Shown piece by piece: positions 1 to 43,890 of a stretch of DNA of 64,000 bases. A model generated the notes under the pieces. It did not search any database. It was not told where the DNA came from and saw nothing but the letters and a program-made list of their open reading frames with translations. The DNA is from Pecten maximus (lineage: Eukaryota), in the NCBI RefSeq assembly GCF_902652985.1, contig NW_022982794.1, forward strand, positions 1 through 64,000, written 5' to 3'. Position 1 is the stretch's first letter. Each line of letters starts with the position of its first letter. A program made the translations under genes and the position numbers.

Positions 1-2540
1 ATCCCTTCAAATCGCTACTTGTCATAAAGTTATGAATTGATTTGAACCCAATTTGGTCAGAAACATCCTTCGTGGAAGCGGATCAGATTTTGCATAAATG
101 GTGACTCTGACCCCCAAGGGGCCAAAGGGGCGGGGCCCAATAGGGGAAATTGAGGCAATTCCTTTAAATCGCTACTAGTCATAAAGTTATGAATGGATTT
201 GAACCCAATTTGGTCAGAAACATCCTTTGGGGAAGGGGAACAGATTTTGCATAAATGGTGACTCTGACCCCCAAGGGGCCAAAGGGGCGGGGCCTAATGA
301 GGAAATAGAGGTAATTCCTTCAAATCGCTACTAGTCATAAAGTTATGAATGGATTTGAACCCGATTTGGTCAGAAACATCCTTTGGGGAAGGGGAACAGA
401 TTTTGCATAAATGGTGACTCTGACCCCCAAGGGGCCAAAGGGGCGGGGCCTAATGGGGAAATAGAGGTAATTCCTTCAAATCGCTACTTGTCATAAAGTT
501 ATGAATGGATTTGAACCCAATTTGGTCAGAAACATCCTTCGTGGAAGCGGATCAGATTTTGCATCAATGGTGACTTTGACCCCAAAGGGGCCTGAGGGGC
601 AGGGCCCAATAGGGGAAATTAAGGCAATTCCTTTAAATCGCTACTTGTCATAAAGTTATGAATGGATTTGAACCCAATTTGGTCAGAAACATCCTTTGGG
701 GAAGGGGAACAGATTTTGCATAAATGGTGACTCTGACCCCCAAGGGGCAAAAGGGGCGGGGCCTAATGGGGAAATAGAGGTAATTCCTTCAAATCGCTAC
801 TAGTCATAAAGTTATGAATGGATTTGAACCCAATTTGGTCAGAAACATCCTTTGGGGAAGGGGATCAGATTTTGCATAAATGGTTACTCTGACCCCCAAG
901 GGGCCTGAGGGGCAGGGCCCAATAGGGGAAATTAAGGCAATTCCTTTAAATCGCTATAAGTCATAAAGTTATGAATGGATTTGAACCCAATTTGGTCAGA
1001 AACATCCTTTGGGGAAGGGGAACAGATTTTGCATAAATGGTGACTCTGACCCCGAAGGGGCCAAAGGGGCGGGGCCTAATGGGGAAATAGAGGTAATTCC
1101 TTCAAATCGCTACTAGTCATAAAGTTATGAATGGATTTGAACCCAATTTGGTCAGAAACATCCTTTGGGGAAGGGGATCAGATTTTGCATAAATGGTTAC
1201 TCTGACCCCCAAGGGGCCTGAGGGGCAGGGCCCAATAGGGGAAATTAAGGTAATTCCTTCAAATCGCTACTAGTCATAAAGTTATGAATGGATTTGAACC
1301 CAATTTGGTCAGAAACATCCTTTGGGGAAGGGGAACAGATTTTGCATAAATGGTGACTCTGACCCCCAAGGGGCCAAAGGGGCGGGGCCTAATGGGGAAA
1401 TAGAGGTAATTCCTTCAAATCGCTACTAGTCATAAAGTTATGAATGGATTTGAACCCAATTTGGTCAGAAACATCCTTTGGGGAAGGGGAACAGATTTTG
1501 CATAAATGGTGACTCTGACCCCCAAGGGGCCAAAGGGGCGGGGCCTAATGGGGAAATAGAGGTAATTCCTTCAAATCGCTACTAGTCATAAAGTTATGAA
1601 TGGATTTGAACCCAATTTGGTCAGAAACATCCTTTGTGGAAGGGAAACAGATTTTGCATAAATGGTTACTCTGACCCCCAAGGGGCCAAAGGGGCGGGGC
1701 CTAATGGGGAAATAGAGGTAATTCCTTCAAATCGCTACTTGTCATAAAGTTATGAATGGATTTGAACCCAATTTGGTCAGAAACATCCTTTGGGGAAGGG
1801 GATCAGATTTTGCATAAATGGTTACTCTGACCCCCAAGGGGCCTGAGGGGCAGGGCCCAATAGGGGAAATTGAGGCAATTCCTTTAAATCGCTACTAGTC
1901 ATAAAGTTATGAATGGATTTGAACCCAATTTGGTCAGAAACATCCTTTGGGGAAGGGGAACAGATTTTGCATAAATGGTGACTCTGACCCCCAAGGGGCC
2001 AAAGGGGCGGGGCCTAATGGGGAAATAGAGGTAATTTCTTCAAATCGCTACTAGTCATAAAGTTATGAATGGATTTGAATCCAATTTGGTCAGAAACATC
2101 TTTTGGGGGAAGGGGAACAGATTTTGCATAAATGGTGACTCTGACCCCCAAGGGGCCTGAGGGGCGGGGCCCAATAGGGGAAATTGAGGCAATTCCTTTA
2201 AATCGCTACTAGTCATAAAGTTATGAATGGATTTGAGCCCAATTTGGTCAGAAACATCCTTTGGGGATGGGGAATAGATTTTGCATAAATGGTGACTCTG
2301 ACCCCCAAGGGGCCAAAGGGGCGGGGCCTAATGGGGAAATAGAGGTAATTCCTTCAAATCGCTACTTGTCATTAAGTTATGAATGGATTTGAACCCAATT
2401 TAGTCAGAAGCATTCTTGGGGGAAGGGGAACAGATTTTGCATAAATGGTGACTTTGACCCCCAAGGGGCCAAAGGGGCGGGGCCCCATATGGAAAATAGA
2501 GGTAATTCCTTTAAATCACTACTAGTCATAAAGTTATAAA
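1..2540. repeat. ~156-157 bp satellite-like tandem array, ~16 copies, running off the left edge
   Basis: The motif 'atcgcta' recurs at 11, 168, 324, 480, 637 and onward. Units are highly similar, with two interspersed variants (cccaataggggaaattgaggcaattccttt vs cctaatggggaaatagaggtaattccttc). Confidence 0.97.
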
Positions 2541-2724
2541 TGCATGTTGTAAACTCAGAGAGTCTGGACTTCATTATTTCTTTAAAGCAGTTGGGATCCC
2601 CATGCTATAACCATAAATAGCATTGTTTGAGGTTAACAAACAAAAGGAATTGAACATGAACATTATTTTGACATTTGGTCAAATCCAACCAGGTGAGCGA
2701 TACAGGCCCCATGGGCCTCTTGTT
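1..2724 (-). mobile_element. Helentron-associated non-autonomous element (HINE-like) carrying the 156-bp array; one terminus at ~2724
   Basis: The minus strand begins AACAAGAGGCCCATGGGGCCTGTATCGCTCACCTGG, the same terminal box as the elements at 5243 and 15207. The array unit matches the internal sequence of the 15207-15845 element. The family call rests on known bivalve HINE/Cg170-type structure. Confidence 0.7.
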
Positions 2725-8094: not shown

Positions 8095-10631
8095 TTAGTG
8101 TACAGAAGTATAAATATTTGTTTCTTTTTTAGGAAAAACTTTAACAAGATGATCGTACAAAGGGTTATCTAACTTCCACAACCCCCTCATCATCGATGCG
8201 CGTATCTTTGCCAGGTCTAAAATAGATTCCTCGTCATTAGTAATTATGGTTGTGATGTCATACTTACCTCCTGTTGTCTCTACGTACTGTTTTACATGAC
8301 GTTCACACTCAGTGAACCAGTATACATCTGATGTCTTTCTGGCTATGTGATGTAGACAATGGTACCCACGGTTATCTACAGCTGTAGTTAGTGCTGGATA
8401 CAACTTACACAGCTCTAAACTAAGCTCCCTGAATCCCCTCTCACAACTACAATGTAATATTGTCCACCCGTCGTTATCTATAGCTGTAATTAGTGCTGGA
8501 TACAACTTACACAGCTCTAAACTAAGCTCCCTGTGTCCCCTCTCACAACTACAATGTAATATTGTCTGCCCCTTGTTAGTTACAGCTGCAGTAAGTGCTG
8601 GATACAACTTACACAGCTCTAAACTAAGCTCCCTGTGTCCACTTATACAAATACAATGTAATATTGTCTGCCTGCCGTTACCTACAGCTGTAGTCAGTGC
8701 TGGATACAACTTACACAGGTATAAACTAAGCTCCCTGTGTCCCATCCAACAACTACAATGTAACACTGTCCATCTTGACTTGTCCACTAACTGTGACATG
8801 TACTGTCCACACGCACAACTCCTATGTACCACACGACCATCTTCTGACTCACACTTATGTTGTACATTCTCAACTCTACACAAGGATTTAAGTACCATTC
8901 TCTCCACTGTCTGAAATATACCACAGTTTCCTGTCCGTGCCACAAAATGGAGCGTGCTCTGTCTCCATTTATCAGTCTCATGTACCAATTGTGGATATTT
9001 GTTATACAACATTGTCACCATCTCTTCTCTCTCAAACAAACACACCTCGTGTAGGACATTGATATTCCCAGCATAATCATGTGATGATCGTGACCTGCGT
9101 GCCCTCGCTGTAGGAATGACGTCATATTTCAGTAGTTGACGCAGTAGTTGTACACTCCCACCCTCCACTACACAAAACGGTGTATCATTGTCAGGTGTGA
9201 CACCCACAGAAAGGAGACATGAGACACAATCTTCTAAACCAATAGAGCATGCTCCATTCAACAACGCACATTTTATCAGGTGGCATAAGTTATTGTCATC
9301 CTTCTGACCACTTAGCAAACTAAAAAATCCCCGTAGAAACAGGGTGTCTGTCCATACGTCTAATCTAACTATACAGTCAGATAGTCTATGGGCATCAGAT
9401 TCACACACTGTGAATAAAAGTTTATACAATTCATCCCTGTCCTGTCTGACATCAGATTTACACTCTCTGGCCAAACGTTCATACATACACTTTCTGACCA
9501 AACGTTTATATTTGTCTTTACTACTAGATGATATAACTATTTTGTTAGCTGTGGATTTTGATGTTGATATATAGTGGAGGAACTTTCGGGGACAATTTTC
9601 TATAAACCCAATTTTTGTGTTCTTGCCATACAAAAGGGCAACAGTGTCCTGAACAGAATCATGACAAAATTTGTAAATTGAATCATCATCATCATCATCA
9701 TCATCATCATAATTATCATCATAAAAAGGATGATATTTTCTTTTTGCAACCAGATATTCAAACATTTCTAAACTTTCCCGCAGAGATCTAATTTTGTCTG
9801 CATGATCAAGTTGATTTCCCTGGAAAGCTTCATCAAGCTTTTTCTTGTCAACACTTTCACTGTTTTTAGGATCTAAATCCCCTTTCTTAACCGTCCCATC
9901 ATTGAGAAAGAGAAACAGAAGAGCTGAAAAGTGCTTCTTTGGTAAATTGTTCAAAGTTGTTTTCATGAAAAGAAATGGTTGTTTGAAGAAATTAATCCCC
10001 TGTTTTTTTAAGCCAGGAACATACTTAAAAAGATGACAACACTGCGGAAATCCTATATCTGGGGCAAGCTTGATGATTTCAGATTCCTTTCCATCAGATA
10101 AGTTTTTAATTTCTGGGACATAACTTTCTAAAATGCGTTGTTTTTCTGTGGTTTTTATGCAGTTTTTACCTCTCAAATCAATGGTTTTTTGGTTGAATAA
10201 TTCACATGAATGTAATTGTGTGCTTTTGAAAATCTCATCTCGAACATTTAGTATCAAACAATTGGATCTATTATTGAGTTTCCCACGAAATGTTGACTTA
10301 ATGGAGATTTCCCTTTTCTTTAAATCTTCAGCGATTTCCCCACTAACATCATCAATATATACAGCTAATTGTGTGTTTGGCTCAACAATTTTATCCCATT
10401 TGGCCATGCTGTAAAGCTGGACAGGATCCTTTGACAGTCTGGTATCCTTATTATCGCCGTCCATTAGCCACTTTAACAGTTGGTAACCCATCAAAGTCTT
10501 CCCATCCCCTGAGGCACCCTTGATGAGGACAATGTTGTTCTTTCTGATCATTTCTTTAGCGTCTTCCAAAGCTTGTATAGAGATCACCTCTGGTTTTAAG
10601 GTTTGAACATCGGTTGTTAATCTTGTTGTTT
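8095..10631 (-). CDS. Terminal exon: STAND P-loop NTPase (nSTAND3-like) plus winged-helix region and ankyrin repeats
   Basis: The 830-aa ORF extends to acceptor ttaatctttctgattgcag|AA. Walker A IVLIKGASGDGKT (GASGDGKT at 10518-10495), Walker B LAVYIDD, sensor LILNVR, GFP (GxP) motif and FCHDS winged-helix motif are present. Ankyrin motifs include INVLHEVC, STLHFVARTG and TILHCSCERGH. Confidence 0.95.
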
Positions 10632-22600: not shown

Positions 22601-23927
22601 TGTGATATGTTTTCCGTACTATACCTACAGCATTTCACACAATATCGCAAACTAAGTACATAGTGATAAGAATTATAAATGACGTGAAGTTATATAATAT
22701 CAATAACCTTTACATAATTATTTTTCGGTAGGGGAATGCTAAATATTATCCTTTCTTTATTAGGCGTTTTCGGGTTCGTCATTACATTTCAGTGAGTATT
22801 AATATTATCTTATTAGTTTACTTATTTTCTATTTATTTCTGCAGATGAGTTGAAGATGTAAACGACAGACAAGTGCTATTCGTATTGTAATTAAGACCCC
22901 TGTCGGATTGATAGGGTATGTACATTGTATTTTGTTAATGTACGTTTCGTAAATTAAACATGATGTATGTTAACCAAGATTATAGATAGTGTAATTCAAC
23001 ATTAACAGAATGATACAATGTATATACAATGTACATATATATAACTTAGCAACACAAATGACGAAGGAAGACAAGTTTTTGACTCATGCCTTGACCGGGC
23101 CGCGAACTCACGATCTACGGCACCCAATCGCCTAGCCAGAAATACCCGCAGCTTATACCGCTGCGCCACATCGGCGTTCTTAAAAAAGAACGTTTCAATG
23201 GTGCAGTGATGGTCGGCCCGATACCCTGACATGATTATTGTCGATGTCGTCTATAAGATGATATGAATACCTGGATCGCAATGTATTTACATATATACGT
23301 GTTGGTGATCCGTAGATATAGATTTGAATTTCCGAGGGAAGTACAATGTACATATATATATATATATTATCCAGTCGTGATGTTAATTTGTCAAAGTTAT
23401 TTGGAATTTGTATTTGATAAAGTATATATCTCATGAAGTGTACATGCATATCACAGACTAGTTTCTAGTTTTCATCATACTTGTCCTAATATTTTGTATT
23501 TCTGTTATTGTAGGGATTTCTTTATGCTTTAATGCTTTAATGGAATATCAGTATCGCTGTAATAAATCAATATAGAGCTGACCCGGCTACATCTGTGTTA
23601 TCTACATATTTTTTTGTGGGCATATGAAAATACACTAATGAAGTTTTCTGTCTCTGAAGAATTAAATGTTTATGTTTGATAGTATGTCATGGTATTGGAC
23701 AAAGATTATAATAAATCATACTGCCATCAAGTGATCATGAAATAGCGGTAGATACCTGTAAAGCGACACCAGAGCCATCCAAATATTATAACAGCCACCG
23801 TACAAACACCTAAAGCCCATCCATTGCTTGTTAGGTCTGGTAACGAAGATCCATTCTCAGAGTCAGACAGCACCATTTGTACTCCATATGTGATCAACAC
23901 CAAGGACACAAGGAAAATTGCCTTCAT
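8095..23927 (-). CDS. Spliced gene: signal peptide/TM - Ig - DZIP3-type HEPN - coiled coil - STAND (nSTAND3-like) NTPase - ankyrin repeat protein, ~1251 aa
   Basis: join(23927-23756, 21281-20982, 20536-19928, 17696-17643, 16284-16201, 10631-8095) = 172+300+609+54+84+2537 = 3756 nt. It is a single open frame and every junction is GT-AG, phase 1. Exon joining is a prediction without transcript data. Confidence 0.78.
8340..8787 (-). repeat. Coding 102-bp (34-aa) near-identical ankyrin repeat array, 4 full units plus 1 partial
   Basis: Units start at 8787, 8685, 8583, 8481 and 8379, with a near-invariant RELSL(E/Y)LCKLYPAL core. Confidence 0.95.
10834..13590. repeat. ~83-bp diverged tandem repeat split by the 11031-13435 insertion
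   Basis: a(g/a)ccagtc...gcagtcacaa...ctaa units at ~10835, 10917 and 11001, resuming at ~13440-13590. Confidence 0.75.
11031..13435. mobile_element. Non-autonomous TIR DNA transposon (foldback-like, superfamily unassigned)
   Basis: Left end ccggtgtagtatggtattttga; the right end reverse-complements to caggtgtagcatggtattttga. It has many internal ggtaaagtgacccc / ggggtcactttacc motifs and poly-G/C runs, and no transposase ORF. Confidence 0.85.
14527..14556 (-). CDS. Candidate 30-nt phase 1-1 micro-exon (G)RNPKLRAVI of the same gene
   Basis: ccttgtgttttacag|GAAGGAATCCTAAGTTGAGAGCTGTGATAG|gtgagt. It is frame-preserving and stop-free in the gene's phase. Confidence 0.45.
15207..15845 (+). mobile_element. 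HINE-like element related to the 156-bp array family
   Basis: Starts acaagaggcc...cactcacctg, contains caccatttatgcaaaatctgttccccttcccc (reverse complement of the 1-2540 unit), and ends ...ggtgagctaaaaa. Confidence 0.7.
16201..16284 (-). CDS. 84-nt exon, coiled-coil linker (GTVAAVNEDVNAVKEDVSAMKQSSSTNG)
   Basis: cttatttttaag|GC...GGAG|gtatga; phase 1-1; heptad pattern V-AAV-NEDV-NAV-KEDV. Confidence 0.85.
16298..17650. repeat. 69-72 bp tandem repeat (~19 copies) filling intron 16285-17642; each unit carries a copy of the exon end and 5' splice site
   Basis: Unit catcctacatatcatacctcttaggttatctatgtctgttgtcacacgtgtacaatcattttatgttagaa. On the minus strand it contains CTAAGAG|GTATGA, identical to the true junction at 17643/17642. 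Confidence 0.95.
17643..17696 (-). CDS. 54-nt exon, coiled-coil linker (GEIGDIKDQITKDREKLR)
   Basis: gttcttttttag|GG...AGAG|gtatga; phase 1-1; open frame. Confidence 0.85.
19137..19628 (+). mobile_element. Diverged HINE-like element
   Basis: Starts aacaaaaggcccaatggacc, has ~3 internal repeats (caaggtcattcatttgaacaaacttggt...), and ends ggtcacttgtccttcaggcaggtgaactaaaaa. Confidence 0.65.
19928..20536 (-). CDS. 609-nt exon encoding a DZIP3-type HEPN domain
   Basis: catttttcag|CA...GAAG|gtaagc. Motifs STKETTNYARICRLVVDV, DFDIPLLYILLRNL, PHRKGWG and NIERLRIQRNEAYGH (R-x5-H at 20138-20118). Confidence 0.92.
20982..21281 (-). CDS. 300-nt exon encoding an immunoglobulin (I-set-like) domain
   Basis: ctttaaattttcag|AT...GAAG|gtaaca. 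Sequence EPTVEI..VKVGQQAELRCSV...VTW...HLIINKTVKSDEGEYVCTVSS carries the canonical C, W and DxGxYxC. Confidence 0.93.
23756..23927 (-). CDS. Probable first coding exon: signal peptide, ~14-aa stub and transmembrane helix
   Basis: Acceptor cattacag| precedes 23935 and the ATG is at 23927. Translation MKAIFLVSLVLITYGVQMVLS-DSENGSSLPDLTSN-GWALGVCTVAVIIFGWLWC-RFT, ending ACAG|gtatct in phase 1 compatible with the Ig exon. Confidence 0.7.
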
Positions 23928-24102
23928 TGTGACTCCTGTAATGATTAACAAGTCATGCACAATATCAACACCATGGCTACAGGGTAAAATGTCTTCATTT
24001 TGACTTCTGATATTATAAACAGGTCATGCACATTAGCCAAACCAAGGCTGCGAAGAAAATTGTCTTCACTGTGACTCCTGTAATGATAAACAAGCCATAC
24101 AC
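23890..24102. repeat. Three diverged 71-bp tandem copies of the acceptor plus start-codon region
   Basis: gactcctgta at 23931, gacttctga at 24002, gactcctgta at 24073. Confidence 0.8.
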
Positions 24103-24349
24103 ACTACCAAGAGACCAAATGGGCCTGTATCGTTCACACGCTTGAATACGGTCAGTCGTCCATATTAAGTAGCAATGTTTATGGAAAACTTGACTGATGC
24201 TGTGCCATAACCTCACCAGCCCTCCTGACCATATGAGCCAAACAATCTGACAATCAAGTCTGAGGTGGCAGAAAATGGGGGTTCAAAAGAAAATGTAAAT
24301 ATTTCATAGTTTCATAACTCGGAACATATACATGTACCACAAATTTTAA

Positions 24350-27300
24350 ACATCTAAGGGCTGTGGACCTTAGAGTGGTAGGGGTTATGGAGGGGGTCCA
24401 AGGTACAGTGTATGTAGTGTGATGGGACACTAGAGTGGTAAGAGTTTGGAGGGATGGAACGGACCCTACAAAGTTAAGGTATCGAAGGGAGAAGACCTAG
24501 TGTGGTAAAGGGTATGGGGGAAAGCAGGGACCCTAGAATGAGAGGTGTATGGAGAAGGGGGCCCTAGAGTTGTAGTGTGTATGGAGGAGGGGGCCCTAGA
24601 GTGGTAGGTTTATGGAGAAGGGGGCCCTAGGGTGATAGGCGTATGAAGAAGTGGGTCCTAGAGTGATAGATGTATGGTGGAAAAAGGGGCCCTAGAGTTG
24701 TAGGTGTATGGAGGAGGAGACCCTAGAGTATAAGAGGAATGGAAGGGAAGGGGACTTCAGAGTGATGGGGTGCGTGGAGGTGGAGGGGAACATAACGCAG
24801 AAGTGAGTATAATGGTTGGGGGACCCTACAATAGTGGTGTTATAGAGGGGAGGTATGGGACCAAGAGTGGTAGATTGTGTGGAAGCATTTGGGAACTAGG
24901 GTGTTAGGAAGTAGTGAGGGGAGGGGATTCTGGACTGGTAGGGGTATAGAGGGGAGGGGACCTTAGAGTGGTATGTTATGTGGAGGCAGTGGGGAAACTA
25001 AGGTGTTAAGAAGGACGGCGGAAGAGGGGACCCTAGACTGGTAAGCGTATTGAGGGGAGGGGACCTTAGTGTGGTAGGGAGTATGAATGAGAAAGGCCGT
25101 TCAATGTTAGAAGGTATGGAGGGGAGAGAACCCTATAGTGGAAAGGGTATTGAGGGAAGGGGAATAGATCGCAAGTGTATAGAGGGAGATGGCGTAGAGT
25201 GCTAGTAATATGGAGGGAGAAGGGACCCTGGAATGGTAGGGGTATAGATGGGAAGGGCCCTTTACTGTTAAAAGGTATGGAGGGTAAATACCATAAGGAG
25301 GTTAGGAGACCATAGAGTGGTAGGGGGTATTGCAGGGATGGGGCCATAAAATGTTAAAGGATATTGGGGAAGAGAACCGTAGGGTGGAAAGGGGTATGGA
25401 AGGCGATGGAATCATAGTAGTAGATGCATGGCGGTGGAGGGGACCTTAGAATGGTATGATAATGGGGTATTGAGGGGAGGGGAAATTGAGGGCCATTGCG
25501 TGGTAGGGGTTACGGAGTAACAGGGGAACCTAGAGTGGTATGGAGGGGGACAAAGAGTGGTATTGGTATGGAGGGAAACATAGAATGGTACTGGTATGGA
25601 CGGAACCTAGAGTGGTACTGGTATGGAGGGGAACCTCGAGTGGTACTGATATGAAGAACCTAGAGTGGTACTGGTAAGGAGGGGAACCTCGAGTGGTACT
25701 GGAAGGGAGTGGAGAGGACCATAGTGTGGTAGGGTGTATAGAAGGGACACAGTGGAAAGGGGAAGGTCTTTGATTGAGTCGAATTATAGAGAGAGAGATG
25801 ACCTGATTATTGGAGGAGGCAAGAGAGGAAGAGGGTACTACAGAGGGAGATCCTGGAGTCTATCTTACCTTATACATTTACGAAATAGTCACTCTCCATT
25901 AATTTGATTTCTATTCTTTTTCCTTTTTAGAAATATAGTCGTAAATTAACATCACCGGTATACCGAGATATCTAAAAGCATGATCACAGCTCAATTGTAA
26001 ACATTTTGAAGCCAGGTACTTAAACGTTAAGGACAGACAGACTGAAGGACAGGCGAACATATGTAAAGATGCGGGCTTAAACAGTTTACTGCTGTAAGTC
26101 AAGTGTATTGAATATGAACAACCCTAGAGGAGAAAAAGGCCAGGGATGATGAGGGGACCAAGAGATGAAGGGGGTACTTTTGGAAGGATCTCTGGAGATG
26201 AAGAGGGCCTGTGAGGGAAGGGGTCAAGAAGAGGGAGAGAGAAACTGGTTAGGAGGGATTCTGGAGATGGCGTTTGAGATGGACGAGATGATCAGGAGAT
26301 GAGGACGGTACATTTTGAAGAGACCTTACTGACGGAGAAGCCCTATACACTTTGACACTCACGTCAGCTTTATTAACTCTGATAACTACATGTAACTGAT
26401 ATCTTACTATGATGAACAATAATTTCCCTTTAAAAAACAAACTCAACGATTGCAATTCAAATTGATACAAAAGGTTCAATGCTCAACACGAATGATTAAA
26501 CACGAAATATTACAATTGACTCTAGGCATTTAAATTGACCTTCGGAGATTTCCACTGATAAAAGTTACGTAATGTTATATACGAAAAAGGGAACCTAGAG
26601 TGATTAGTAGAGATAGTGGGGGTACTTATAGCGGTATGAATATTGAGGGAAAGGGTGTTGGAGGAAACCCTAGATGTATACTGGGTATGGATGTTCAGGG
26701 GACCGTATAGTGATAGGGGTATGAAGGAAAGGAGATCCTGAGTGGTAGAGGGTATGGAGGGTAGGGGACCTTAGGATGGTAGAGGGATCCTAGAGTTGTA
26801 ATGGGTATAGAGCGAATTGGACCTTAGAGACGTACAGCGTAGAGTGGTAGATGTATATATAAGGAGGGATCCCAAGAGTGGTAGGGTATTACGGAGTGAA
26901 ACAGTAACCTAGAGTAGTATTAGTAGATAAAAGTCGGGACTACAAAGTGGTAGGTTGTGTAGAAGGGACATACTGGAAAGGGGAAGGCCTTTATTTGAGA
27001 TAATCACAGAGAGGCAGATGAGAAGGAGAAGCCTGGAAAGGAAGAGGGTACTTGATTCGGAGGACTCGTGATGAGAGAATCGGGAGTTGAAGAAGGTACT
27101 AGATAAGAAGTGCCCTGCAGAGGGAGAGCCTGGAGTTGACTTAACCTTCTGTATTTATAAAAAATGATCACTCCCCATTAATGGTATTTCAAAATAAATG
27201 CATCTGATTTCAACTCAGGAATTAACATCACAAATACACCCAGATTTGAAAAATCAGGATCACAGTTCAATTGTAAGCTGACCAGGAGAGGAAGAGGGTA

Positions 27301-30300
27301 CTTTTAAACGGGATTTGAGGAGAGGATCCACAGGAGGGAGAGGGAATCTGTTTGGGAGGGACCATGGAGATGAGTGGCACAGGGCGTTTGAGGTGAATGA
27401 GGGGACCAGGAGCGGAGGACGGTACATTTAAAGTTAACTTTTACTGGGGAGAAATCCTTGACAATTGTTATATGACTTGTCCTCCTTGCTTTAAAGCTGC
27501 ATACCAGCTTGTAACACACTACTACGCTCACATCAGCTTGATTTACTCTGATAATTATATTTGGCATATTACTAAAGGGAGCCCTTTAGTGGTAGGGGGT
27601 ATTGATGGGAGAGGACTTGAGGGGTAGAAGTATCGAGGAGACGGGGCCCTAGAGTGAACTTTACTGGGGAGAAATCCTTGACAATTTGACACGTCACATT
27701 GTTATATGACTTGTCCTCCTTGCTTTAAAGCTGCATACCAGCTTGTAACACACTACTACACTCACTTCAGCTTGATTTACTCTGATAATTATATGTGACA
27801 GGGCATATTAGTAAAGGGAGCCCTTTAGTGGTAGGGGGTATTGATGGGAGAGGACTTGAGGGGTAGAAGTATCGAGGAGACGGGGCCCTAGAGTGGTAGG
27901 AATATAGAGGGGACCCAAGGGTGGAAGTGAGAATGAAGGAAAACGGGGTATTGACGGGGAGATGTCTCTGAAGGGATAATGGGGGAATTCTAGAGTAGAA
28001 GATGTGTGGAGGGGGAGGGAGACCCTACAGACGTACTTGTTATGGTTGGTCAGGGGACTGTAGAGTGGTAGGAGGTATGGAGGATGAGGGCCCAAAAGTG
28101 GTAAGGGATATTAAAGGGGAGGGGATCCTCGAATGGTAGGAGTAATAGAGGGAGAATTATTGTCTTATACACAGGTAGCATTGAATTCAGTCAGTGAATC
28201 TATAAGACAGTTGACCCATAGTGATCCTTACTCAGGTAGCCGTAGCTATATCATCAAACATGTCTGTGTTTTAGGGTGTAAACACTGGCGTTATGCAGAC
28301 ATGGTGGACTTTCCAGTTACATACAATCTCAAAACAACCAATGGTTATTTGTTAAATATTCACATGACGCATCATGTGTCTTAATGACACAGAACTTTGA
28401 TATATGCATTGCATTTCAGTACTTGGAACTCGATATAATATGGTAATCACATGATATCAAGCATACAGAATACGTTAACATTGATTGGGCAACACAAAAG
28501 ATTTAATTTGAAAAAAAATTAATAGGCATTGGACGTCTTCCACTGATTACAAACAAGATATATTGATGTACATTTAAAGGATCTGTAGAGTGCTAGGGCC
28601 CCTGGGTATGGACGGAAGGGGGCCCTTGAGTGGTAGGGGTATTGAAGAGGGGACCATAAACAGGTAAGTGTATGGAAGGGGTGGGCCCCATAGAGTGGTA
28701 GATTGTGTGTAGAGAGAGGGGAAAGTAGGGTGAAAGGGAAACAGATTACTGGGGACCCTCGAGTGACTGGGGTATGGAAAGGTATGGGACTAGAGTTGTA
28801 GGGGGAATACATGTTTCCCTAGAGTTGTAGGGGGAATAAAGGACACATTAAATGTTAGGGGCATGGAAAGGACACACTAGACCGGTAGGGAATATGGAAA
28901 GACAAGGGACTGGAGTTGTAATGAGAATAAATGGCACCCTTAAGTTGTAGAGGGTAGTAAGATGGAGGAGACTAGAGTTGTAAAAGAATAGGGGGAATAA
29001 AGGGCATCCTAGAGTATTAGGGAGGATCAAATGTAGGGGACTAGCGTTATAGGGGGAATAAAGGTTACACTAGAGTGGTAGGGTTATGAAAAGGGAGGGG
29101 ACTAAAACTGTAATGGGAATAAAAGGCTTCCTAGAGTGGTTGAGAGTATGAAAACGGAGGAGAGGAGTAGAAGTATGCAAGGTTGTTATTTTTAATACAA
29201 TTGGTGTGCTACTGGACAATAGCCTGAACCTTTACCAACTGGTTATTGCAAAGAAGTTATTAAAAGATTTAATCACATCTGATCCATGTGACCTTGAAAG
29301 TAGGTCAAAGAAATTCATATTAACAAACTTGGTAGCACTTCATTCCAGCATCCTACTAGACACATTTCATCAACCTGATTTGTTGGGTTATTGCGAAGAA
29401 TTTATACAAATGATATGCATAACAAATTATATCTATGTTAAAGTATGTCAAGGTCAAGGTCAAATAGGTCAATGGGTTATATGTATTGAGTCTTTTTCAC
29501 CTGAATTAACTTTTTATCTTTTCTGGAATCTGAAAGGTAAATTATATTTAGGTGAAAGTGTTGACTCTAATATAACCATAATGAGAGTGTTTTACCATTA
29601 CTTCTGATTATCCAGGTGAAAAATACAGGCTCTGTGGGCCTCTTTAAATTACTTACCGGTTCATTTGTTATAGTAATTATATGATACTTACCTCTAAAAT
29701 ATGTTGATTTTGTATATGAATTCTTCATACACTGGTGGTCGAGTATAAGTGATGATTCTAAAAGCAAGAACTCTTAATTTTCTTTATACACAGGTAAAAT
29801 CGAATTCAGTCAGTGATTCTATAAACCAGAGTTTTTTTTTATCTTTATACACAGGTAGAATTGCATTCAGTCAGTGATTCTATATGAAGTGGACAAATAG
29901 CGATCCTTACACAGGTGGCCGTAAGTATATCATCCAACATGTATGTGTTTAAGGGTGTAAACACTGGTTTTATGGAGACATGGTGGACTTTCCAGTGACG
30001 TACAACCTCAAAACAACCAATGGTTATTTGTTAAATATCCACATGACGCATCATGTGTCTTAATGACACAGAACATTGATATGTGCATTGCATTTCAGTA
30101 CTTGGAACTCTATGTAATACAATACTGCACTCATGTCAGCACGATATAATATGGCAATCATATGACCTCAGACATACAAAGTAAAATAACATTGACTGGG
30201 CCACACAAAAGATTTAAATTGAAAAATATTTAAATGGGCGTTGGACGACTTCCAGAGATTACAAACCAGATATATTGAAGTACATTTAAATGATCTGTAG

Positions 30301-31600
30301 ATTGGTAGGGCCCCCGGGTATGGACGGAAGGGGACCATTGAGTGGTAGGGGTATTGAAGAGGGGACTTTAAACAGATAGTGGTATGGAAGGGGTGGGGCC
30401 ATAGGATGGTAGAGGGTATGTAGGGAGAGGGCACAATAAGGACGGGGACCCATGAGTGTCAGGGGGATGAAAAGGGGAGGGGGAGATTGGGGAGGATAGG
30501 GATCAGAGTTGGTGGGGAAACACCATAGAAAGGTAGGGGTATGGAAAGGGAGTGGACTAGAGTTGTAGGGGAATAAAGGACACCAAAGAGTGGTAAGGGG
30601 TACGGAAATTAAGGAAACTCTAGAGTGGTAAGGAGTATAGAATTAAACGGAACCTATAGTGTTAGGGGAGAACGGACTTGATCAAAGAGTGGTAGGGGAT
30701 GTAAAAGGCAACCCAGTCTGGTAGGGGGTGTAGAAAGGGAAAAGTTCCTTGATTGATGGTGATATGGTGGGGACCCTCTAGTGGTTAGAGGTATGGACGG
30801 GAACCTAATACCGTAGGGAATAAAGTGGTGAGAGGACCCTAAATTAGAAGAGTGTAGTGGCTGTTAAAAATCTGTGATGAGAAAGGTGTTTGACTGTAAG
30901 AGTTCATTCAGACCTCAGGCAGGAAAAGGGGCCAGGAACGGAAGACACTACTTGTTTAGAAGGACTCTGGAGAAAAAAATGGTATTTTATTGTGAAAGAG
31001 GAAGAAGGCATTGAAGGTGAATCCTAAAAAGCGAGGAGATATCTGAAGGGGACCGTGGAGAGAAATACTCATGGATAGGTAGGAAAGGGGTATAAAGTAG
31101 GACCGTTTGAAGGTAGAGAGCAGACAAGGGGAGACGGGGTCAGCAGAGAACGAGACTTCTTGATGAAGGGTGAACAAGGAGAGTGAGTCGAAGAGTAAGT
31201 AAAGGACCAGGAGAGGAAGAGGGTAATTCATTGGAAAGGGACCTGGAGATGGAGAACAAATAGAAAGAGATATTATCAAAAACCTAAGAGGGGAAAAGGC
31301 ATGGGACATAGGACATGTAGGTGACCTTGACAGCAAGATCGAACTTTTGGAAGGGACCCTGAAGATGGAGAGGGTCCTGGGTAGATGTTCAGGACAGGGT
31401 GCCAATAGAAGGGGACGGGATACATTTATAATTTAGGGCCAAGACCCTTTAAATGTACACAAGGTCATGAAAATGCCAGACAAGTATAAATGGAACCTTA
31501 CAGGAGAAGGGAGACCATAACATTAAGTGGGAAGGGACCTTGAAACCTGGGAAGTTTAGGGACATTAAATGAGACTTTAATATTATAGACAAATAAGGAT
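24350..31600. repeat. Patchwork of degenerate purine-rich minisatellite (core cctagagtggtaggggtatggagggg, roughly 30-40 bp period) with interspersed unique blocks
   Basis: The top strand is strongly G/A-biased, with many imperfect ctagagt(g/t)gta motifs at 24350-25860, 26600-27130, 27570-28150, 28590-29170 and 30290-31600. Confidence 0.85.
27437..27894. repeat. Recent ~220-240 bp tandem duplication
   Basis: acttttactggggagaaatccttgacaat...gacggggccctagagtg occurs at ~27437-27656 and again at ~27657-27894. Confidence 0.9.
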
Positions 31601-32055
31601 CGTCTTATGTTATTGGTGATTGTCATATAAAACATTTCCATGTCTTAAAAGTGTACAGACAAGACATTTAAATCGGCCTTTTGATATCAGAGATAAGTTG
31701 ATGCATGAATAGCACAAGACATGCTATTAGCAATACATTTAACACATTGATAAAATTACCATGAATCACCAGAGACTTGGACCACTTAGTTACTTTCTAT
31801 GGGAGTTCATGAATGATGTTAATATTGGCATACAGAAAGTATATAAAACATTTTTGGAGTGATGAGTTGTCTGATAGGGAATATCTTGCCTAACACAAAA
31901 GCAAACAGAAAAAATGTGTTAAACACAACTTCATACTTTGTATAGAATACAAATAATCCTTAGTTAACATTAATTATTTCATTTATACATATATAGCTAA
32001 ATGAAAAATGCTGTCGAATTCCACATACTAACAAATGTATATTACTATGATATAT

Positions 32056-35590: not shown

Positions 35591-36821
35591 TCAAGGTGTG
35601 ATTTGATTCAGAGTTGGTATATTTTTTAAAATAGAATAATCATGTGTATTCAAATCGGGGACGTATAAAGCCTTCGTTACCTATATGAACAGACGTTTGT
35701 GTATGCGTGTTTACGTGTGTGGATGTTTGTGTGTGTATATGTGAGGGTTTGTGGATGAGTGTGTAACCAGATCGACGGAATACAAACAATTTGGGTAAAT
35801 ATATGTTTAAAACACAGTTAAACAGGTGAGAAGCACATTTACTTTTTTTAATCGCTTTTCGTTAATCGACGTATCAAACATTCCTCTTCCTCTTTGCTGT
35901 CAATACTCCTCCTAGTTTTACAATACATTATTTGAGTATGTTAATAATCATAGATAATAATTCGGCTTTTAATGTCAACATCGAGCGAACACGCTTCTCC
36001 TTATTCTCTCTGTCCCGGGTCTGTAAACACTAACGTTTATGTCTCTGCTTGCTTTGTCAAATCGCTTTCTTTCGAACCTTCTGCGTTTCAATGAAACACT
36101 TGTTAAATGTCTGATTGTATTTGTTAATTCAGATTTCTAAACTCTGCACGCTTACCGCGCCATAAAGTGTAGACATGCCGACTACTTGGCCTACCTAACC
36201 AGTTTCTGTAAACTAACCTGGCCACCGTCGTATTGTTGATACAGATGTACACAGAAAAAATCAGTTACCAATCGTGTAACCTTTGCAACAGTGATAACAA
36301 AGCAGAAAATTGTGCAACAAACCGTGAAGGTAGTGATTAACGTCATCGGGGTTTAAATACCTGTATTTAATCATTCAGTTGGTATCTTATCTTTTTTTCG
36401 TATTAGGTTCTCTATCGTGGATATATGAATCTTGTGTGTGTATGATATGTAACATATTTTGGGGTAACAACGAAAACCTTACTTTGGTGCGATACATGAG
36501 TGTATTTGGTTATATTACATACCTGTATTGTAGACGGAGGGGTCACGAGTTGTAATGGTAATAAAGGACATTCTGGATTGGAAGAGGGTATGGAAAGGGA
36601 GAAAACTAGAGTTGAAGTGGGAATAAAGGGCACTCTAGAGTGGGAGAGAGCATGAAAAGGGAGGGGACAAGAGTTGTAGGTGGACATAAATGTAACCCTA
36701 GAGGAGTAGAGGTATGCAAGGTTGTTCTTTTTAATTCAATTTGTGTGCTACTGGACAATATCCTGAACCTTTACCAACTGGTTATTGTGAAGAAGTAATT
36801 GAAAGATTTAACACCTTATCA

Positions 36822-37321
36822 NNNNNNNNNNNNNNNNNNNNNNNNNNNNNNNNNNNNNNNNNNNNNNNNNNNNNNNNNNNNNNNNNNNNNNNNNNNNNNN
36901 NNNNNNNNNNNNNNNNNNNNNNNNNNNNNNNNNNNNNNNNNNNNNNNNNNNNNNNNNNNNNNNNNNNNNNNNNNNNNNNNNNNNNNNNNNNNNNNNNNNN
37001 NNNNNNNNNNNNNNNNNNNNNNNNNNNNNNNNNNNNNNNNNNNNNNNNNNNNNNNNNNNNNNNNNNNNNNNNNNNNNNNNNNNNNNNNNNNNNNNNNNNN
37101 NNNNNNNNNNNNNNNNNNNNNNNNNNNNNNNNNNNNNNNNNNNNNNNNNNNNNNNNNNNNNNNNNNNNNNNNNNNNNNNNNNNNNNNNNNNNNNNNNNNN
37201 NNNNNNNNNNNNNNNNNNNNNNNNNNNNNNNNNNNNNNNNNNNNNNNNNNNNNNNNNNNNNNNNNNNNNNNNNNNNNNNNNNNNNNNNNNNNNNNNNNNN
37301 NNNNNNNNNNNNNNNNNNNNN
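36822..37321. other. Assembly gap (500 N)
   Basis: Run of 500 n. Confidence 1.
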
Positions 37322-42419: not shown

Positions 42420-43890
42420 ATTTGCCAGTGGGCCGGCTAAAGGTTGCGGTTAAAAGGGGCCTAATGAGGCTGTGCTAATTATGATAAAAGACGGGTACAA
42501 AATACATTTCTAAACATACAGCAGATATAGCAAACAATAAATTGGCCAGAGACAACAGATATTTTGTTGAGAAGGAGATTGATAAAGTTGATGAGTAAAG
42601 GGCAAAGCATGTTAGAGACCTGAATGGAGTAAAGCTAAAGAATGGGATTATATAGTTTACAGTATGTGCAGATGTTCCAAATGAAGACTATGTTGGCTAT
42701 GTCGATCAAAGAAAGAACTCTGAGGTTTTTGGCACCTGGTCAGAAGTTAAAAGGTAAAAGCTCTACATGGATCGAGCTCGAGACTGTAAATAAAATATTA
42801 CGGTCTAAAAAGCAAAGTGTACAACGGTACAAAGACATCAAAAATGTGGTTAGCATTATAGAGAAAGGCAGCAAAAATCAGGAGTTGCAAGAGATAGCAC
42901 CATGTATCAATGATTCATGTCTGAGAAATTTTATCAATGTAGACACTGCATGGATTTCTAGAAATAACAATGAAGATCACCTTAGCAGGTATGTGGATAG
43001 TAATGGTTGATGTATAGAGGGATATGTTTACAGAGAGTTATATACAGATTAGGGAAAGCATTCTGTTGATAGGTTTGTTAATAATTCAAATGCAAAATGT
43101 TAGGGATTTACTTCCAGATAGTGGACGCCAGGCAGAAATGGTGTTATTATTTCAAACAGCCATGGGGTCACGAGACCATCTGGTGGGTGGAACCAACTAG
43201 AATAATTTGTTAAACAGTGTACAAAATTATCATATATAAAGCGAGAAACTCTGCTAATTCCAATGTGGAAAACTCCTTTTTGGCCTAAAAATGGTATGTG
43301 TATGCCATTTCTAAAAAAAAAAAAAAAAAAAACCAGAATATACGGATCTTGCACTGTGACGAAAAGCAATGACAATAATGGTAATTTTGGAAATCTGTTG
43401 AAATTGAGGAAGATTCTTCAAGTACATTCAAAGGACCTACAGAATATTTGTGTGTCTATTTTATTCAAATCAGCTCAAAGACAAAACAATAGTTCTGTGA
43501 TAAATGTAACTTTAGGACATTTTTTTTGTTTATGTGAAAAGTATGACTGTACAAAAGATGTGGTGATTTGTCTTTGATTGTGGTATGGATTTTTTTGCTA
43601 GATCTTTTAGGTTTGACGATATCAGTTCTTTAAAATGTGTAAATGCTACTTTTGGAGAAACAAATGATTGTCTATAGACAAGGTTATTTAGTGCTAATTT
43701 TGCAAGGAGAGGCAGACACTTATCCTATTGAGATATAAGGAGATACATTGAGGAGTCGGATATCGGTTTAGAGTCAAAGTCACTTTGTTAAGGACTGTTT
43801 ATCGGTATGGGAAGAAGTGTGGTCATATTGACAATGCTAAGTCTATTTCATATACCAGAGCAAGAGAGACAATCGTCACCAGATCGATAG
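42420..43890 (+). mobile_element. Decayed, internally deleted DIRS-order (tyrosine recombinase) retrotransposon, copy 1
   Basis: Pol N-terminus PVGRLK...IKDGYKIHF. RNase H KSSTWIELETV...KNVVSIIEKGS...WISRNNNE.DHLSR. Downstream methyltransferase-like segment HSVDRFV..NAKC*GFTSR*WTPG...LLIPMWKTPFWP. YR fragments FRFDDISSLKC (43606) and ISYTRARETIV (43845). Multiple stops and frameshifts. Confidence 0.85.

Follow-up and report, generated by a model that had tools for sequence, protein, structure and literature searches.

The locus LOC117320960 of the scallop Pecten maximus raises the question of whether a single gene joins an RNase effector to an ankyrin sensor and holds both at a membrane. It is an annotated RefSeq gene on the minus strand of the window (the whole stretch of DNA analysed, 64,000 nt), with a coding span of 23927-8095 and a product of 1261 aa (XP_033731337.1, P0001) that is labelled “uncharacterized”. 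The protein maps onto the window with 100% identity, and the RefSeq model comprises seven coding exons, all on the minus strand: exon 1 (23927-23756, 172 nt, ending in phase 1, with the start ATG at 23927), exon 2 (21281-20982, 300 nt) with a single Ig domain, exon 3 (20536-19928, 609 nt) with a HEPN domain of the DZIP3/hRUL138 type, two linker exons, exon 4 with heptad-like spacing (17696-17643, 54 nt) and exon 5 with V/A at a/d positions (16284-16201, 84 nt), a microexon of 30 nt (14556-14527) and the last exon (10631-8095, 2537 nt with the stop codon), which runs from the nSTAND3 NTPase to the ankyrin repeats. Exons 2 to 5 and the microexon are of phase 1-1. Each exon has its GT donor and AG acceptor and all introns are in phase 1, which preserves the frame over 1261 fully open codons. 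A previous sequence-only reading had joined six exons in one frame, all of them present at the coordinates given, but had overlooked the microexon. Because skipping of the microexon leaves the frame intact, the six-exon model (in which the last exon is exon 6) is nevertheless a legal variant of 1251 aa rather than 1261 aa. At an independent paralogous locus, L001, exon order and splice-site contexts match those of LOC117320960, down to the exon 1 donor (ACAG/GTATCT). Judged from an exon joining that agrees with both the RefSeq model and paralog conservation, LOC117320960 is a real, intact gene.

The gene resides on an unplaced, satellite-rich scaffold of 100 kb, and a minisatellite in intron 4 (16301-17649, minus strand; 71 nt x 19, 94% identity) begins at the donor site of exon 4 and repeats its sequence. 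In such surroundings, with their abundant satellites, one could suspect a chimeric copy that was assembled recently where repeats abound and turnover is fast, that plays no role itself and that is either pseudogenising or a haplotype-specific presence/absence variant. The mosaic composition of the gene (see below) and a (GAT)9 tract prone to slippage, at which one paralog is out of frame, would fit this idea, as would the strong variation in copy number and in presence/absence of such families in pearl oyster (PMC9646362). We consider it improbable, given that the 1261 codons are without interruption, the splice sites canonical throughout and the catalytic and nucleotide-binding motifs all intact.

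LOC117320960 is a member of a lineage-specific expansion in scallop and oyster of STAND NTPases of the HEPN(DZIP3-type)-nSTAND3-ankyrin type. The expansion of HEPN(DZIP3)-STAND-ANK fusions in bivalves, together with the analogy to RNase L, was described in 2013 (PMC3710099) and again in 2021-2022 (PMC8195603, PMC9646362). As judged from its closest matches, the gene is a mosaic, with a TM-Ig-HEPN leader that matches one paralog group and an NTPase core that matches another. Because every junction joins phase-1 exons, the family diversifies via module shuffling. The domain order deduced previously is borne out by hydropathy and by Pfam, where HEPN_DZIP3, nSTAND3, I-set and Ank all match well above chance. 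The protein begins with a signal peptide and a TM helix, continues with Ig and a DZIP3-type HEPN, and passes through a short heptad linker to the P-loop NTPase of the nSTAND3 family and to ~10 ankyrin repeats.

The N-terminal leader is the less usual part of this architecture. Exon 1 encodes a segment that resembles a signal peptide (residues 1-21, 23927-23865) and, after a spacer of 14 aa that includes an NGS sequon, a TM helix (residues 36-54, 23822-23766). Apart from residues 3-21 and 36-54, no stretch of the protein looks TM-like, and both calls come from hydropathy and inspection by eye only. The Ig domain (I-set/Ig_3, E about 1e-7 with Pfam profiles on the whole protein) has its Cys...Trp...Cys core in exon 2. 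With a signal peptide followed by a TM helix, this domain would be cytosolic, a placement absent from the earlier reading. That reading had called the TM and Ig module particularly unusual, which is too strong. Five or six loci of P. maximus carry the SP-TM-Ig-HEPN leader, with 79-95% identity in P0012, P0013 and P0021/P0043 and less in P0023 (65%), while LOC117318904 is counted by cluster membership only. Ig modules related to exon 2 also sit in the signal-less STAND proteins P0052 and P0019 of M. yessoensis (51% identity between the Ig exon and the tandem Ig repeats of P0052). In oyster, P0081, a TM-HEPN-nSTAND3-ANK protein by its predicted domains, shows membrane tethering arising independently, and Ig+HEPN as well as TM-anchored STAND/HEPN architectures have been reported (PMC8195603).

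Whether the leader belongs to the chief product of the gene can be asked, since most relatives begin at the HEPN domain and their conserved N-terminus 'MA.KY.S.KETTN' corresponds to the interior of exon 3. The main product could then be a soluble cytosolic HEPN-nSTAND3-ANK protein, and because the SP-TM and Ig exons would represent a minor isoform or have been misattached by the gene predictor, the membrane tether would be minor or artefactual. Intron 2 indeed contains a candidate alternative first exon (20810-20849, minus strand; ATG plus 13 codons, GT donor, phase 1), 12/13 residues of which are those of the annotated N-terminus of the paralog P0035 (LOC117317497); if used, it would yield a soluble isoform without TM and Ig. 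Moreover, the gene models are all computational predictions and they are fluid around exon 1. Its 5' end is present in three degenerate tandem copies of 71 nt (23893-24110, minus strand), each of which comprises the first codons with their ATG and a ttacag that resembles an acceptor; the proximal copy is the true exon 1 start. In the paralog P0023 the frame runs through the ttacag acceptor (GVTMK), and exon 1 is therefore usable as an internal 180-nt exon of phase 1-1. On the other hand, five or six separate loci have the leader joined to a HEPN-STAND body, with splice sites and phases conserved between them, the Ig exon is 94-96% identical to that of paralogs while the flanking exons fall to 71-81%, and no neighbouring gene is detectable as an alternative owner of exons 1 and 2. 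In comparison with L001, Ka/Ks for exons 1-3 is 0.23-0.40, with few changes behind these values (0.23 for exon 1, from 4 synonymous and 3 non-synonymous changes; 0.27 for the HEPN exon), and thus below 1 for exons 1 and 2. A primarily soluble product therefore retains a minor, but real, share of our credence, and we proceed with the membrane-tethered protein.

The HEPN domain scores 101.6 bits against the Pfam HEPN_DZIP3 profile (cutoff 27, E=4e-29) and its AF2 model is all-alpha (pLDDT 91.9). The human prototype of the DZIP3-type HEPN is familiar as a ubiquitin ligase that binds RNA. The R-x5-H motif, which the sequence-only reading had rightly described as intact, reads RNEAYGH (20138-20118, minus strand; R291, N292, H297). 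Among 184 related domains, R is present in 168, N in 174, H in 170 and R together with H in 157; D90, R99 and R128 are further near-invariant polar residues. Conserved catalytic centres typically show such a pattern, and RNase activity is predicted. A small chance may be granted to the opposite view that the domain binds RNA, nucleotides or proteins and that signalling proceeds by scaffolding via ANK, Ig and coiled coil rather than by RNA cutting. In agreement with the claim that the family lacks functional characterisation, our literature search found no RNase assay or activity for any DZIP3-type HEPN. Foldseek comparison of the model with solved structures gave nothing significant, including among HEPN RNases (best E 0.5, Csm6 HEPN chains at E about 2), a profile search of PDB sequences with the domain gave no match, and other families have documented cases of inactive HEPN domains that serve as binders (PMC3710099). 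Against this view stands the retention of R, N and H in 85-95% of the related domains, along with the three additional polar residues. Furthermore, paralogs with 70-80% identical NTPase-ANK bodies bear death-like, CARD or DED N-termini in place of HEPN, which sets the gene in an immune context, and because these alternatives are death-fold effectors, HEPN occupies the effector slot.

The coiled coil proposed to follow HEPN is only partly there: some 45 aa show partial a/d hydrophobic periodicity, but no Pfam coiled-coil family matches XP_033731337.1, while paralogs contain long and clear ones. The exon 5 linker has a counterpart in the paralogs P0008 and P0021, whose linker exon shows 89-93% identity to it. 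A coiled coil beside HEPN could hold this domain constitutively dimerised, which would weaken the step in which oligomerisation switches on the enzyme.

The nSTAND3 domain (10575-10117, minus strand; 78.8 bits for a cutoff of 27.2, E=5e-22) opens the last exon, and its Walker A (GASGDGKT, K461; 10518-10495) and Walker B (VYIDD, D510/D511; 10368-10348) motifs on the minus strand are as intact as had been claimed. Walker A G41/G43/K44 and Walker B D93 are invariant in the NTPase comparison, and conservation across 44 relatives extends to R130, a GFP motif (F194, P195), H323 and R376; Walker A/B, the sensor-1-like Arg and the MHD-like His are both intact here and conserved among relatives. NTPase and ANK are separated first by a region of helical and winged-helix-like character, which contains the invariant His of a 'CHD' motif, and then by a helical spacer. 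The AF2 model of exon 6 (pLDDT 84.8) contains a P-loop core of five strands, one region of helices, another with a beta-hairpin, and an ANK solenoid, the latter dominating Foldseek results over the NTPase core (ANK matches down to E=1e-11). The (GAT)9 microsatellite (9682-9708, minus strand), common to the 'clade A' NTPase paralogs, encodes a poly-Asp run in a low-confidence loop of a predicted beta-hairpin just N-terminal of the conserved His. The effector-NTPase-repeat layout is typical of STAND, NLR and Avs proteins, as previously stated. The description as NLR/Avs-like holds for this tripartite layout, but XP_033731337.1 is no NLR in the strict sense, with no NACHT or LRR match at E<=0.1, and no Avs by the PADLOC models; its link to Avs is confined to nSTAND3, the Pfam family of the Avs5 NTPases.

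The ankyrin array (Ank_2, E=2e-18) comprises ~10 repeats (roughly 9183-8137, minus strand), including four near-identical 34-aa repeats with a 102-nt period (8332-8739, minus strand). The first three are 85-90% identical to one another in nucleotide sequence. Differences between the near-identical repeats are almost all non-synonymous (6-10 versus 1 synonymous in the three most alike) and are concentrated in the D-x-x-G-x hairpin and where helix 1 begins; across 35 repeat units, entropy is highest at positions 22, 24, 29, 32 and 33. The variable residues lie mainly on the canonical ankyrin binding face. By analogy with NLR-like proteins, fungal and other, that have highly internally conserved (HIC) repeats (PMC13449251), in which a STAND NTPase is likewise followed by near-identical ANK repeats varying at few surface positions, this would be a diversity-generating sensor design. 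The HIC proteins use NACHT/NB-ARC NTPases and different effectors, and in the scallop protein near-identity is limited to about 4 of its roughly 10 repeats.

On balance we lean towards a mosaic gene for a membrane-tethered HEPN-nSTAND3-ANK protein, in which oligomerisation sensed through ankyrin would switch on a HEPN RNase. We infer this reasonable mechanism from established STAND/NLR/Avs and HEPN biology, and the topology from sequence features. After cleavage of the signal peptide, the single TM helix would leave only ~14 residues with one N-glycosylation sequon outside, and hold the entire Ig-HEPN-linker-NTPase-ANK body at the cytosolic face of a membrane. At rest, the NTPase would be locked with ADP. 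Ligand binding to the variable residues of the ankyrin array, the presumed sensor, would allow nucleotide exchange and oligomerisation, the N-terminal HEPN domains would meet to form composite R...H active sites, and cleavage of viral RNA, or of host tRNA, rRNA or mRNA, would cause translation arrest or cell death beside the membrane. An RNase output is not a new idea; by analogy with RNase L, it was proposed for the DZIP3-type HEPN and its bivalve expansions in 2013 (PMC3710099) and repeated since (PMC9646362, PMC8195603). The large bivalve gene family itself has been described computationally since 2013; newly noted here are the mosaic of paralog modules and the ankyrin variability on the binding face.

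The closest published counterparts are the bivalve DZIP3/hRUL138-like HEPN-STAND proteins (Anantharaman et al. 2013, PMC3710099; Takeuchi et al. 2022, PMC9646362), which share the HEPN Pfam family, its N-terminal effector position and the R-N-x-H motif, the fusion to a STAND NTPase and repeats (ankyrin explicitly among them), the expansion and rearrangement in oyster and pearl oyster, and a proposed RNase L-like antiviral output. They differ in having NACHT NTPases and mostly LRR, TPR or WD40 repeats, whereas the scallop protein has nSTAND3 and adds signal peptide, TM helix and Ig before HEPN. The Crassostrea expansions (Kaur et al. 2021, PMC8195603) are receptor-like; they have a TM helix, their intracellular part may hold STAND NTPases, HEPN RNases and ankyrins, and some C. 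gigas proteins join HEPN with Ig repeats. In contrast to their DED-TRADD-N modules and Cys-rich ectodomain, the scallop protein is without TRADD-N or DED, its ectodomain is of only ~14 residues and its Ig would be on the cytosolic side. RNase L (ankyrin repeats, pseudokinase, KEN/HEPN RNase) is a functional analogue, in which animal antiviral defence likewise couples an ankyrin sensor to an RNase of the HEPN superfamily that must dimerise. The scallop protein matches neither kinase nor KEN and is not a member of that family; its domain order is reversed, with HEPN N-terminal and ANK C-terminal, and its switch would be a STAND NTPase instead of 2-5A-driven dimerisation.

A precedent for an animal STAND-type protein with RNA cleavage and translation arrest as output is provided by the antiviral factors SAMD9/SAMD9L, whose nuclease effector cleaves tRNA. 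By description they stand apart, with an effector fold and sensor unrelated to those of the scallop protein and without TM helix or HEPN. A link between SAMD9/SAMD9L and the Avs5 sensor has been noted (PMC13581612). Bacterial Avs5 (AVAST type 5, SIR2-nSTAND3-TPR/Sel1; 10.1101/2025.07.08.663546) and bacterial HEPN-STAND proteins (PMC3710099) follow the same effector-STAND-helical-repeat layout, and the Avs5 NTPase is annotated in that preprint as nSTAND3 (PF20720), as in the scallop protein. Avs5 combines a SIR2 effector with a TPR sensor, where the scallop protein, which is eukaryotic, intron-containing and, as predicted, membrane-anchored, has HEPN and ANK.

On the minus strand of the window, six exons read in a single frame. 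Exon 1 (23927-23756, 172 nt) comprises the start ATG, a signal-peptide-like segment and a transmembrane (TM) helix, exon 2 (21281-20982, 300 nt) an Ig domain and exon 3 (20536-19928, 609 nt) a HEPN domain. Exons 4 (17696-17643, 54 nt) and 5 (16284-16201, 84 nt) are linkers, and exon 6 (10631-8095, 2537 nt including the stop) encodes an NTPase and ankyrin (ANK) repeats. Between 24100 and 8000, as read on the minus strand, all junctions of this gene, LOC117320960, are GT...AG and all introns are in phase 1, so that the frame is continuous. The exons were searched one at a time. Exon 6 alone, used as a homology query, retrieved a 100% identical database protein, P0001 (RefSeq XP_033731337.1, 1261 aa), which is recorded as 'uncharacterized protein LOC117320960 [Pecten maximus]' and lies on an unplaced scaffold of 100,284 bp; this entry served for the whole-protein analyses. 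Since P0001 mapped back to the window recovers the six exons, the coordinates and frame put forward in the sequence-only reading are right. The mapping also yields a seventh coding piece, a 30-nt microexon (14556-14527, minus strand, phase-1/phase-1); the sequence-only model corresponds to the version that skips it, with 1251 instead of 1261 aa. No further exons of the family and no alternative effector exons were found in the introns within the window.

Two of these introns carry tandem repeats. In intron 4, a 71-nt minisatellite (16301-17649, 19 copies, 94% identity) starts exactly at the exon-4 donor and each unit copies that donor (ctaagag/gtatga), producing a ladder of potential cryptic donors. 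A 156-nt satellite, present in 16 copies at the start of the window (4-2542), has related copies in intron 5 (15331-15782) and relatives that make up an extended array in the equivalent intron of an independent P. maximus paralog locus (L001, 26753-30277).

All four families named for an HMM check of the original reading (HEPN_DZIP3, nSTAND3, I-set and Ank) match P0001 above cutoff. The HEPN_DZIP3 match (PF18738, residues 220-347, E=8e-28) reaches 97.5-101.6 bits for a cutoff of 27, and with the HEPN exon as query, an exhaustive search gave 1384 related representative clusters at E<=1e-3. The R-x5-H motif is intact, as had been stated: RNEAYGH supplies R291, N292, which follows the R, and H297. 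Among 184 related HEPN domains aligned by HMM, the R is kept in 168/184, the N in 174/184 and the H in 170/184, with R and H occurring jointly in 157/184; D90, R99, W111 and R128 are also near-invariant in this alignment. The AlphaFold2 model of the domain, based on a 41-sequence alignment, is all-helical and confident (pLDDT 91.9). Foldseek comparison of this model with the PDB gave nothing significant (best E 0.5, with Csm6 chains only at E about 2) and a PDB sequence profile search with the HEPN alignment returned chance matches only; the domain is therefore assigned to the HEPN superfamily by its Pfam family and by the 2013 profile analysis in which the DZIP3/hRUL138 HEPN family was defined (PMC3710099, Anantharaman et al. 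2013). The literature searched contained no assay of DZIP3-type HEPN RNase activity, which agrees with the earlier description of the family as functionally uncharacterised. A non-catalytic HEPN domain might be considered on this score, but with the predicted catalytic R and H present and common to most relatives it appears quite improbable.

The NTPase is recognised by nSTAND3 (PF20720, residues 436-588, E=3e-22 to 5e-22) at 78.8-79.3 bits, the cutoff being 27.2. Walker A (GASGDGKT) and Walker B (VYIDD) are both intact, in agreement with the first reading, and in a 44-sequence NTPase alignment G41, G43 and K44 of Walker A and D93 of Walker B are invariant, D94 being conserved in at least 90%. 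The 44 relatives also conserve a sensor-1-like R130, a G-F-P motif (F194-P195), H323 of a 'CHD' motif and R376; H323 resembles the His of the NB-ARC MHD motif. In the AlphaFold2 model of exon 6 (pLDDT 84.8) a five-strand P-loop core is followed by a helical domain, a beta-hairpin region with a poly-Asp run as its loop, a helical spacer and the ankyrin solenoid. The order of secondary structures is compatible with a P-loop core, helical domain and hairpin, and no superposition on a solved STAND structure was obtained. Foldseek confirmed the ankyrin part of the model (E down to 1e-11); in Foldseek and phmmer searches with the whole exon, ankyrin/DARPin matches dominate, and these searches are uninformative on the NTPase core. 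Between HEPN and NTPase, the linker at residues about 350-400 had been read as a coiled coil. Its partial a/d hydrophobic spacing fits this claim but no Pfam coiled-coil match was obtained in P0001. At this position some paralogs, P0021 and P0007 among them, carry perfect heptad arrays (E-D-V-T-A-V-x type) that are long, and a short coiled coil in P0001 is plausible.

The ankyrin repeats (Pfam matches at residues 943-1143 and beyond) include four consecutive 34-aa units (8739-8332, minus strand), of which the first three are 85-90% identical in DNA. These three differ by 6-10 non-synonymous codons versus 1 synonymous. In a set of 35 unique repeat units drawn from 19 paralogs, entropy is highest at positions 22 and 24 (each an x in D-x-x-G-x) and at positions 29, 32 and 33, where helix 1 begins. 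In designed ankyrin binders the corresponding positions are the randomised ones and make up the canonical target-binding face. Small as the sample of 35 units is, this variability supports a putative role in variable ligand recognition. The array resembles the repeats with 'high internal conservation' of fungal and other NLR-like proteins (PMC13449251).

P0001 has only two hydrophobic segments, residues 3-21 (Kyte-Doolittle 2.11) and 36-54 (1.89), both encoded by exon 1. By hydropathy, the first, which has one Lys, a hydrophobic core and V-L-S ahead of D22, looks like a cleavable signal peptide (SP), and the second, followed by an Arg, like a stop-transfer helix. Both segments fit the membrane tethering claimed earlier. 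The claim had, however, left the cytosolic placement of the Ig domain unmentioned: from the predicted SP and TM arrangement, about 14 residues with an NGS sequon would be extracellular or lumenal and the Ig, HEPN, NTPase and ANK domains would therefore lie on the cytosolic side. A wholly lumenal or secreted protein is unlikely, as the same domains occur in signal-less paralogs and NTPase and ANK are cytosolic types. The Ig domain itself (residues 60-150, E about 1e-7) is matched in P0001 by Ig_3 (31.9 bits, cutoff 30) and I-set (29.5 bits, cutoff 23.7) and falls below the Pfam cutoff when a partial ORF is used alone; exon 2 shows the C...W...C core. Five tandem Ig repeats that are 51% identical to exon 2 precede death-like helical modules in the M. 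yessoensis protein P0052, and an Ig array precedes nSTAND3 and ANK in another relative, P0019. These two proteins are devoid of signal sequence and TM helix, and a predicted cytosolic use of Ig domains of the exon-2 type is thereby supported.

In the databases searched, the SP-TM-Ig leader was found at E<=0.01 in P. maximus only, at LOC117320960, LOC117317979, LOC117316762, LOC117320370 and LOC117318904, and in partial form at LOC117332830. At LOC117317979, which is the paralog locus L001 and encodes P0012, exon order and splice-site contexts are identical to those of LOC117320960, and Ka/Ks between the two is 0.23 for exon 1, 0.40 for exon 2 and 0.27 for exon 3, the values for exons 1 and 2 resting on few changes. 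This conservation speaks for the leader exons being true coding parts of genes of this type. An acceptor-like site precedes exon 1, and the relative P0023 reads through it and uses exon 1 internally, and a hairpin of the two hydrophobic segments would then be expected. Moreover, a short ORF in intron 2 (20849-20810, minus strand) has an ATG and a phase-1 GT donor, and 12/13 of its residues equal the annotated N-terminus of the relative P0035; it is a candidate alternative first exon that would give rise to a soluble isoform devoid of TM helix and Ig domain. A product that is mainly soluble, as such a start could provide, seems rather unlikely next to the leader conserved at L001. Around and upstream of the start codon, 23893-24110 contains three degenerate 71-nt copies of the start of exon 1. 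Each copy has an ATG, the first codons of the signal peptide and an acceptor-like site, and the upstream ones would give short upstream ORFs if transcribed; matching copies lie upstream of the paralog ATG (L001 about 9890-10033). Immediately upstream of the gene there is no ORF with a Pfam match.

Of the 51 relatives returned by the search with exon 6, nearly all are scallop proteins (Pecten, Mizuhopecten, Argopecten, Ylistrum). Most start at HEPN or with death-like, CARD (P0028) or DED (P0044) N-termini, and HEPN therefore sits in the effector slot of an NLR-like family. Matches to the HEPN exon include oyster (Saccostrea) HEPN-nSTAND3-ANK proteins, one of which (P0081) has an N-terminal TM segment and another (P0095) a fibrinogen-related domain. 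HEPN-Roc/COR proteins are also among them, as are TPR-containing coral proteins named 'DZIP3'. The SP-TM-Ig leader is less widespread.

LOC117320960 is a mosaic with respect to its paralogs. Over leader and HEPN (P0001 1-350), P0012 is 82-98% identical and P0002, which has a death-like N-terminus, is unrelated. Over the NTPase core (400-850) identity is 24-52% with P0012 and 50-94% with P0002 (62-94% except for one 50-residue bin), and over the ANK region (850-1250) it is 60-84% and 50-80%, respectively. In the DNA comparison, made with the P0012 locus, similarity extends over exon 1 and its flanks, over exon 2, intron 2 and exon 3, over the linker exons and over the 3' half of exon 6; it is missing over the NTPase core and returns just downstream of a (GAT)9 tract. 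The scaffold as a whole being a haplotig of the P0012 locus is ruled out by the 24-52% identity of the NTPase parts. A decaying chimeric copy would account for the mosaic, but the frame is open throughout, the splice sites are canonical and the HEPN and Walker motifs are intact; we consider decay very unlikely. Judged from these comparisons, the scallop family evidently diversifies via module exchange, aided by the uniform phase-1 junctions. The (GAT)9 tract (9682-9708) encodes the poly-Asp loop. In the relative P0030 (LOC117320372, 486 aa) the C-terminus, from a poly-Met onwards, is a +1-frame reading of the stretch homologous to the (GAT)9 region; P0030 is therefore frameshifted or mis-assembled at the microsatellite. 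At LOC117320370, isoforms X3 (P0021) and X2 (P0043) have a common SP-TM-Ig-HEPN leader but differ in their NTPase bodies, which show 80% and 31% identity with that of P0001; read-through from one tandem paralog into the next or the use of alternative terminal exons may underlie this.

With regard to known systems, the label NLR did not hold beyond the layout: Pfam gave no match to NACHT (PF05729), NB-ARC or LRR (E<=0.1 / E<=0.001), the repeats being ankyrin. The comparison with bacterial Avs (AVAST) is apt in that the scallop protein has the same tripartite order of effector, STAND NTPase and repeats, here HEPN, nSTAND3 and ANK, and the Avs5 NTPase is annotated as nSTAND3 (preprint 10.1101/2025.07.08.663546). 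However, this is a resemblance of layout only, as PADLOC found no Avs match for exon 6 and the HEPN exon, only AbiO (E=0.0011) and a generic ankyrin model. An NCBIfam scan gave no relevant model. In contrast to RNase L and Ire1, the protein has no Pfam match to a kinase, pseudokinase or KEN domain. By its domain matches, P0001 belongs to the HEPN_DZIP3 and nSTAND3 families and not to the NACHT-NLR, Avs or RNase L families; by layout, it may work like an NLR or Avs.

HEPN RNases such as RNase L, Csm6, Cas13 and HepT form their active site from paired domains. From this behaviour and that established for STAND NTPases (NLR, Apaf-1, Avs), we infer a mechanism in which the ANK array would bind a ligand, binding would free an ADP-locked NTPase, oligomerisation would place HEPN domains side by side and the paired domains would cut RNA, a cleavage that the exon-1 anchor would restrict to the cytosolic side of a membrane. 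Bivalves, corals and amphioxus are predicted to have hundreds of STAND/NLR-like proteins whose effector is a nuclease, and the question at stake is an 'abortive-infection-like' RNA-cleaving output in invertebrates, akin to those of bacterial Avs/Cas13/Csm6 and vertebrate RNase L. The idea of a sensor-activated RNase is sound as a hypothesis by analogy, but it is not new: RNase L-like or antiviral RNA degradation has already been proposed for HEPN-STAND proteins, with bacterial HEPN-STAND parallels cited (PMC3710099). The pearl oyster has 202 such proteins, most with Rx4-6H and >50 fused to NACHT (PMC9646362, Takeuchi et al. 2022). The architecture had been called particularly unusual. The exact order SP-TM-Ig-HEPN-nSTAND3-ANK was indeed not found in the literature searched and, in the databases searched, does not extend beyond a small clade within P. 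maximus, but the wording is too strong, as oysters have proteins pairing HEPN with Ig repeats and TM-anchored receptors with STAND NTPases, HEPN RNases and ankyrins among their intracellular parts (PMC8195603, Kaur et al. 2021). Since the gene was already annotated and the hypothesis on its mechanism dates back a decade, the value of LOC117320960 is that of a well-dissected example and of a picture of module shuffling, not of a new type of system. It is a compact and intact test case with R291/H297, K461, D510/D511, the ANK hairpins and the exon-1 anchor as mutational handles, and its mosaic structure with all-phase-1 exons illustrates how an immune repertoire of this kind diversifies via module swapping.

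A bolder and rather doubtful extension is a combinatorial cassette system, in which phase-1 exons for leader (SP-TM, Ig), effector (HEPN, death-fold), coiled-coil spacer of variable length and NTPase-sensor would be swapped between loci. Given the intron-2 start and the two NTPase bodies of the LOC117320370 isoforms, alternative first and last exons might also be chosen, so that one locus could yield a soluble or a tethered RNase, with the cytosolic juxtamembrane Ig as a module for homotypic clustering or sensing. If true, this would amount to a membrane-surveillance STAND RNase, for which an animal counterpart is undescribed.

As to the rest of the window, Rfam and tRNA scans gave no matches, and none of the other long ORFs has a Pfam match above cutoff. 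A tRNA-like stretch in intron 1 (about 23050-23200), for which ARAGORN calls no tRNA and Rfam has no match, is probably a tRNA-derived SINE. Strand asymmetry is strong in 24000-32000, with a GC skew up to +0.48 and G-rich repeats of 28-33 nt (about 31 nt), and a run of N (an assembly gap or masked) lies at about 36800-37330. Finally, 32000-64000 contains large segments of about 7.08 kb in tandem, which include minisatellites of 46 and 16 nt and repeated ORFs at 42642/49721 and 47052/54133/61156, the first of which (42642-43007) has a sub-threshold match to MLKL_N (E=0.0056, 16.6 bits versus a cutoff of 27).
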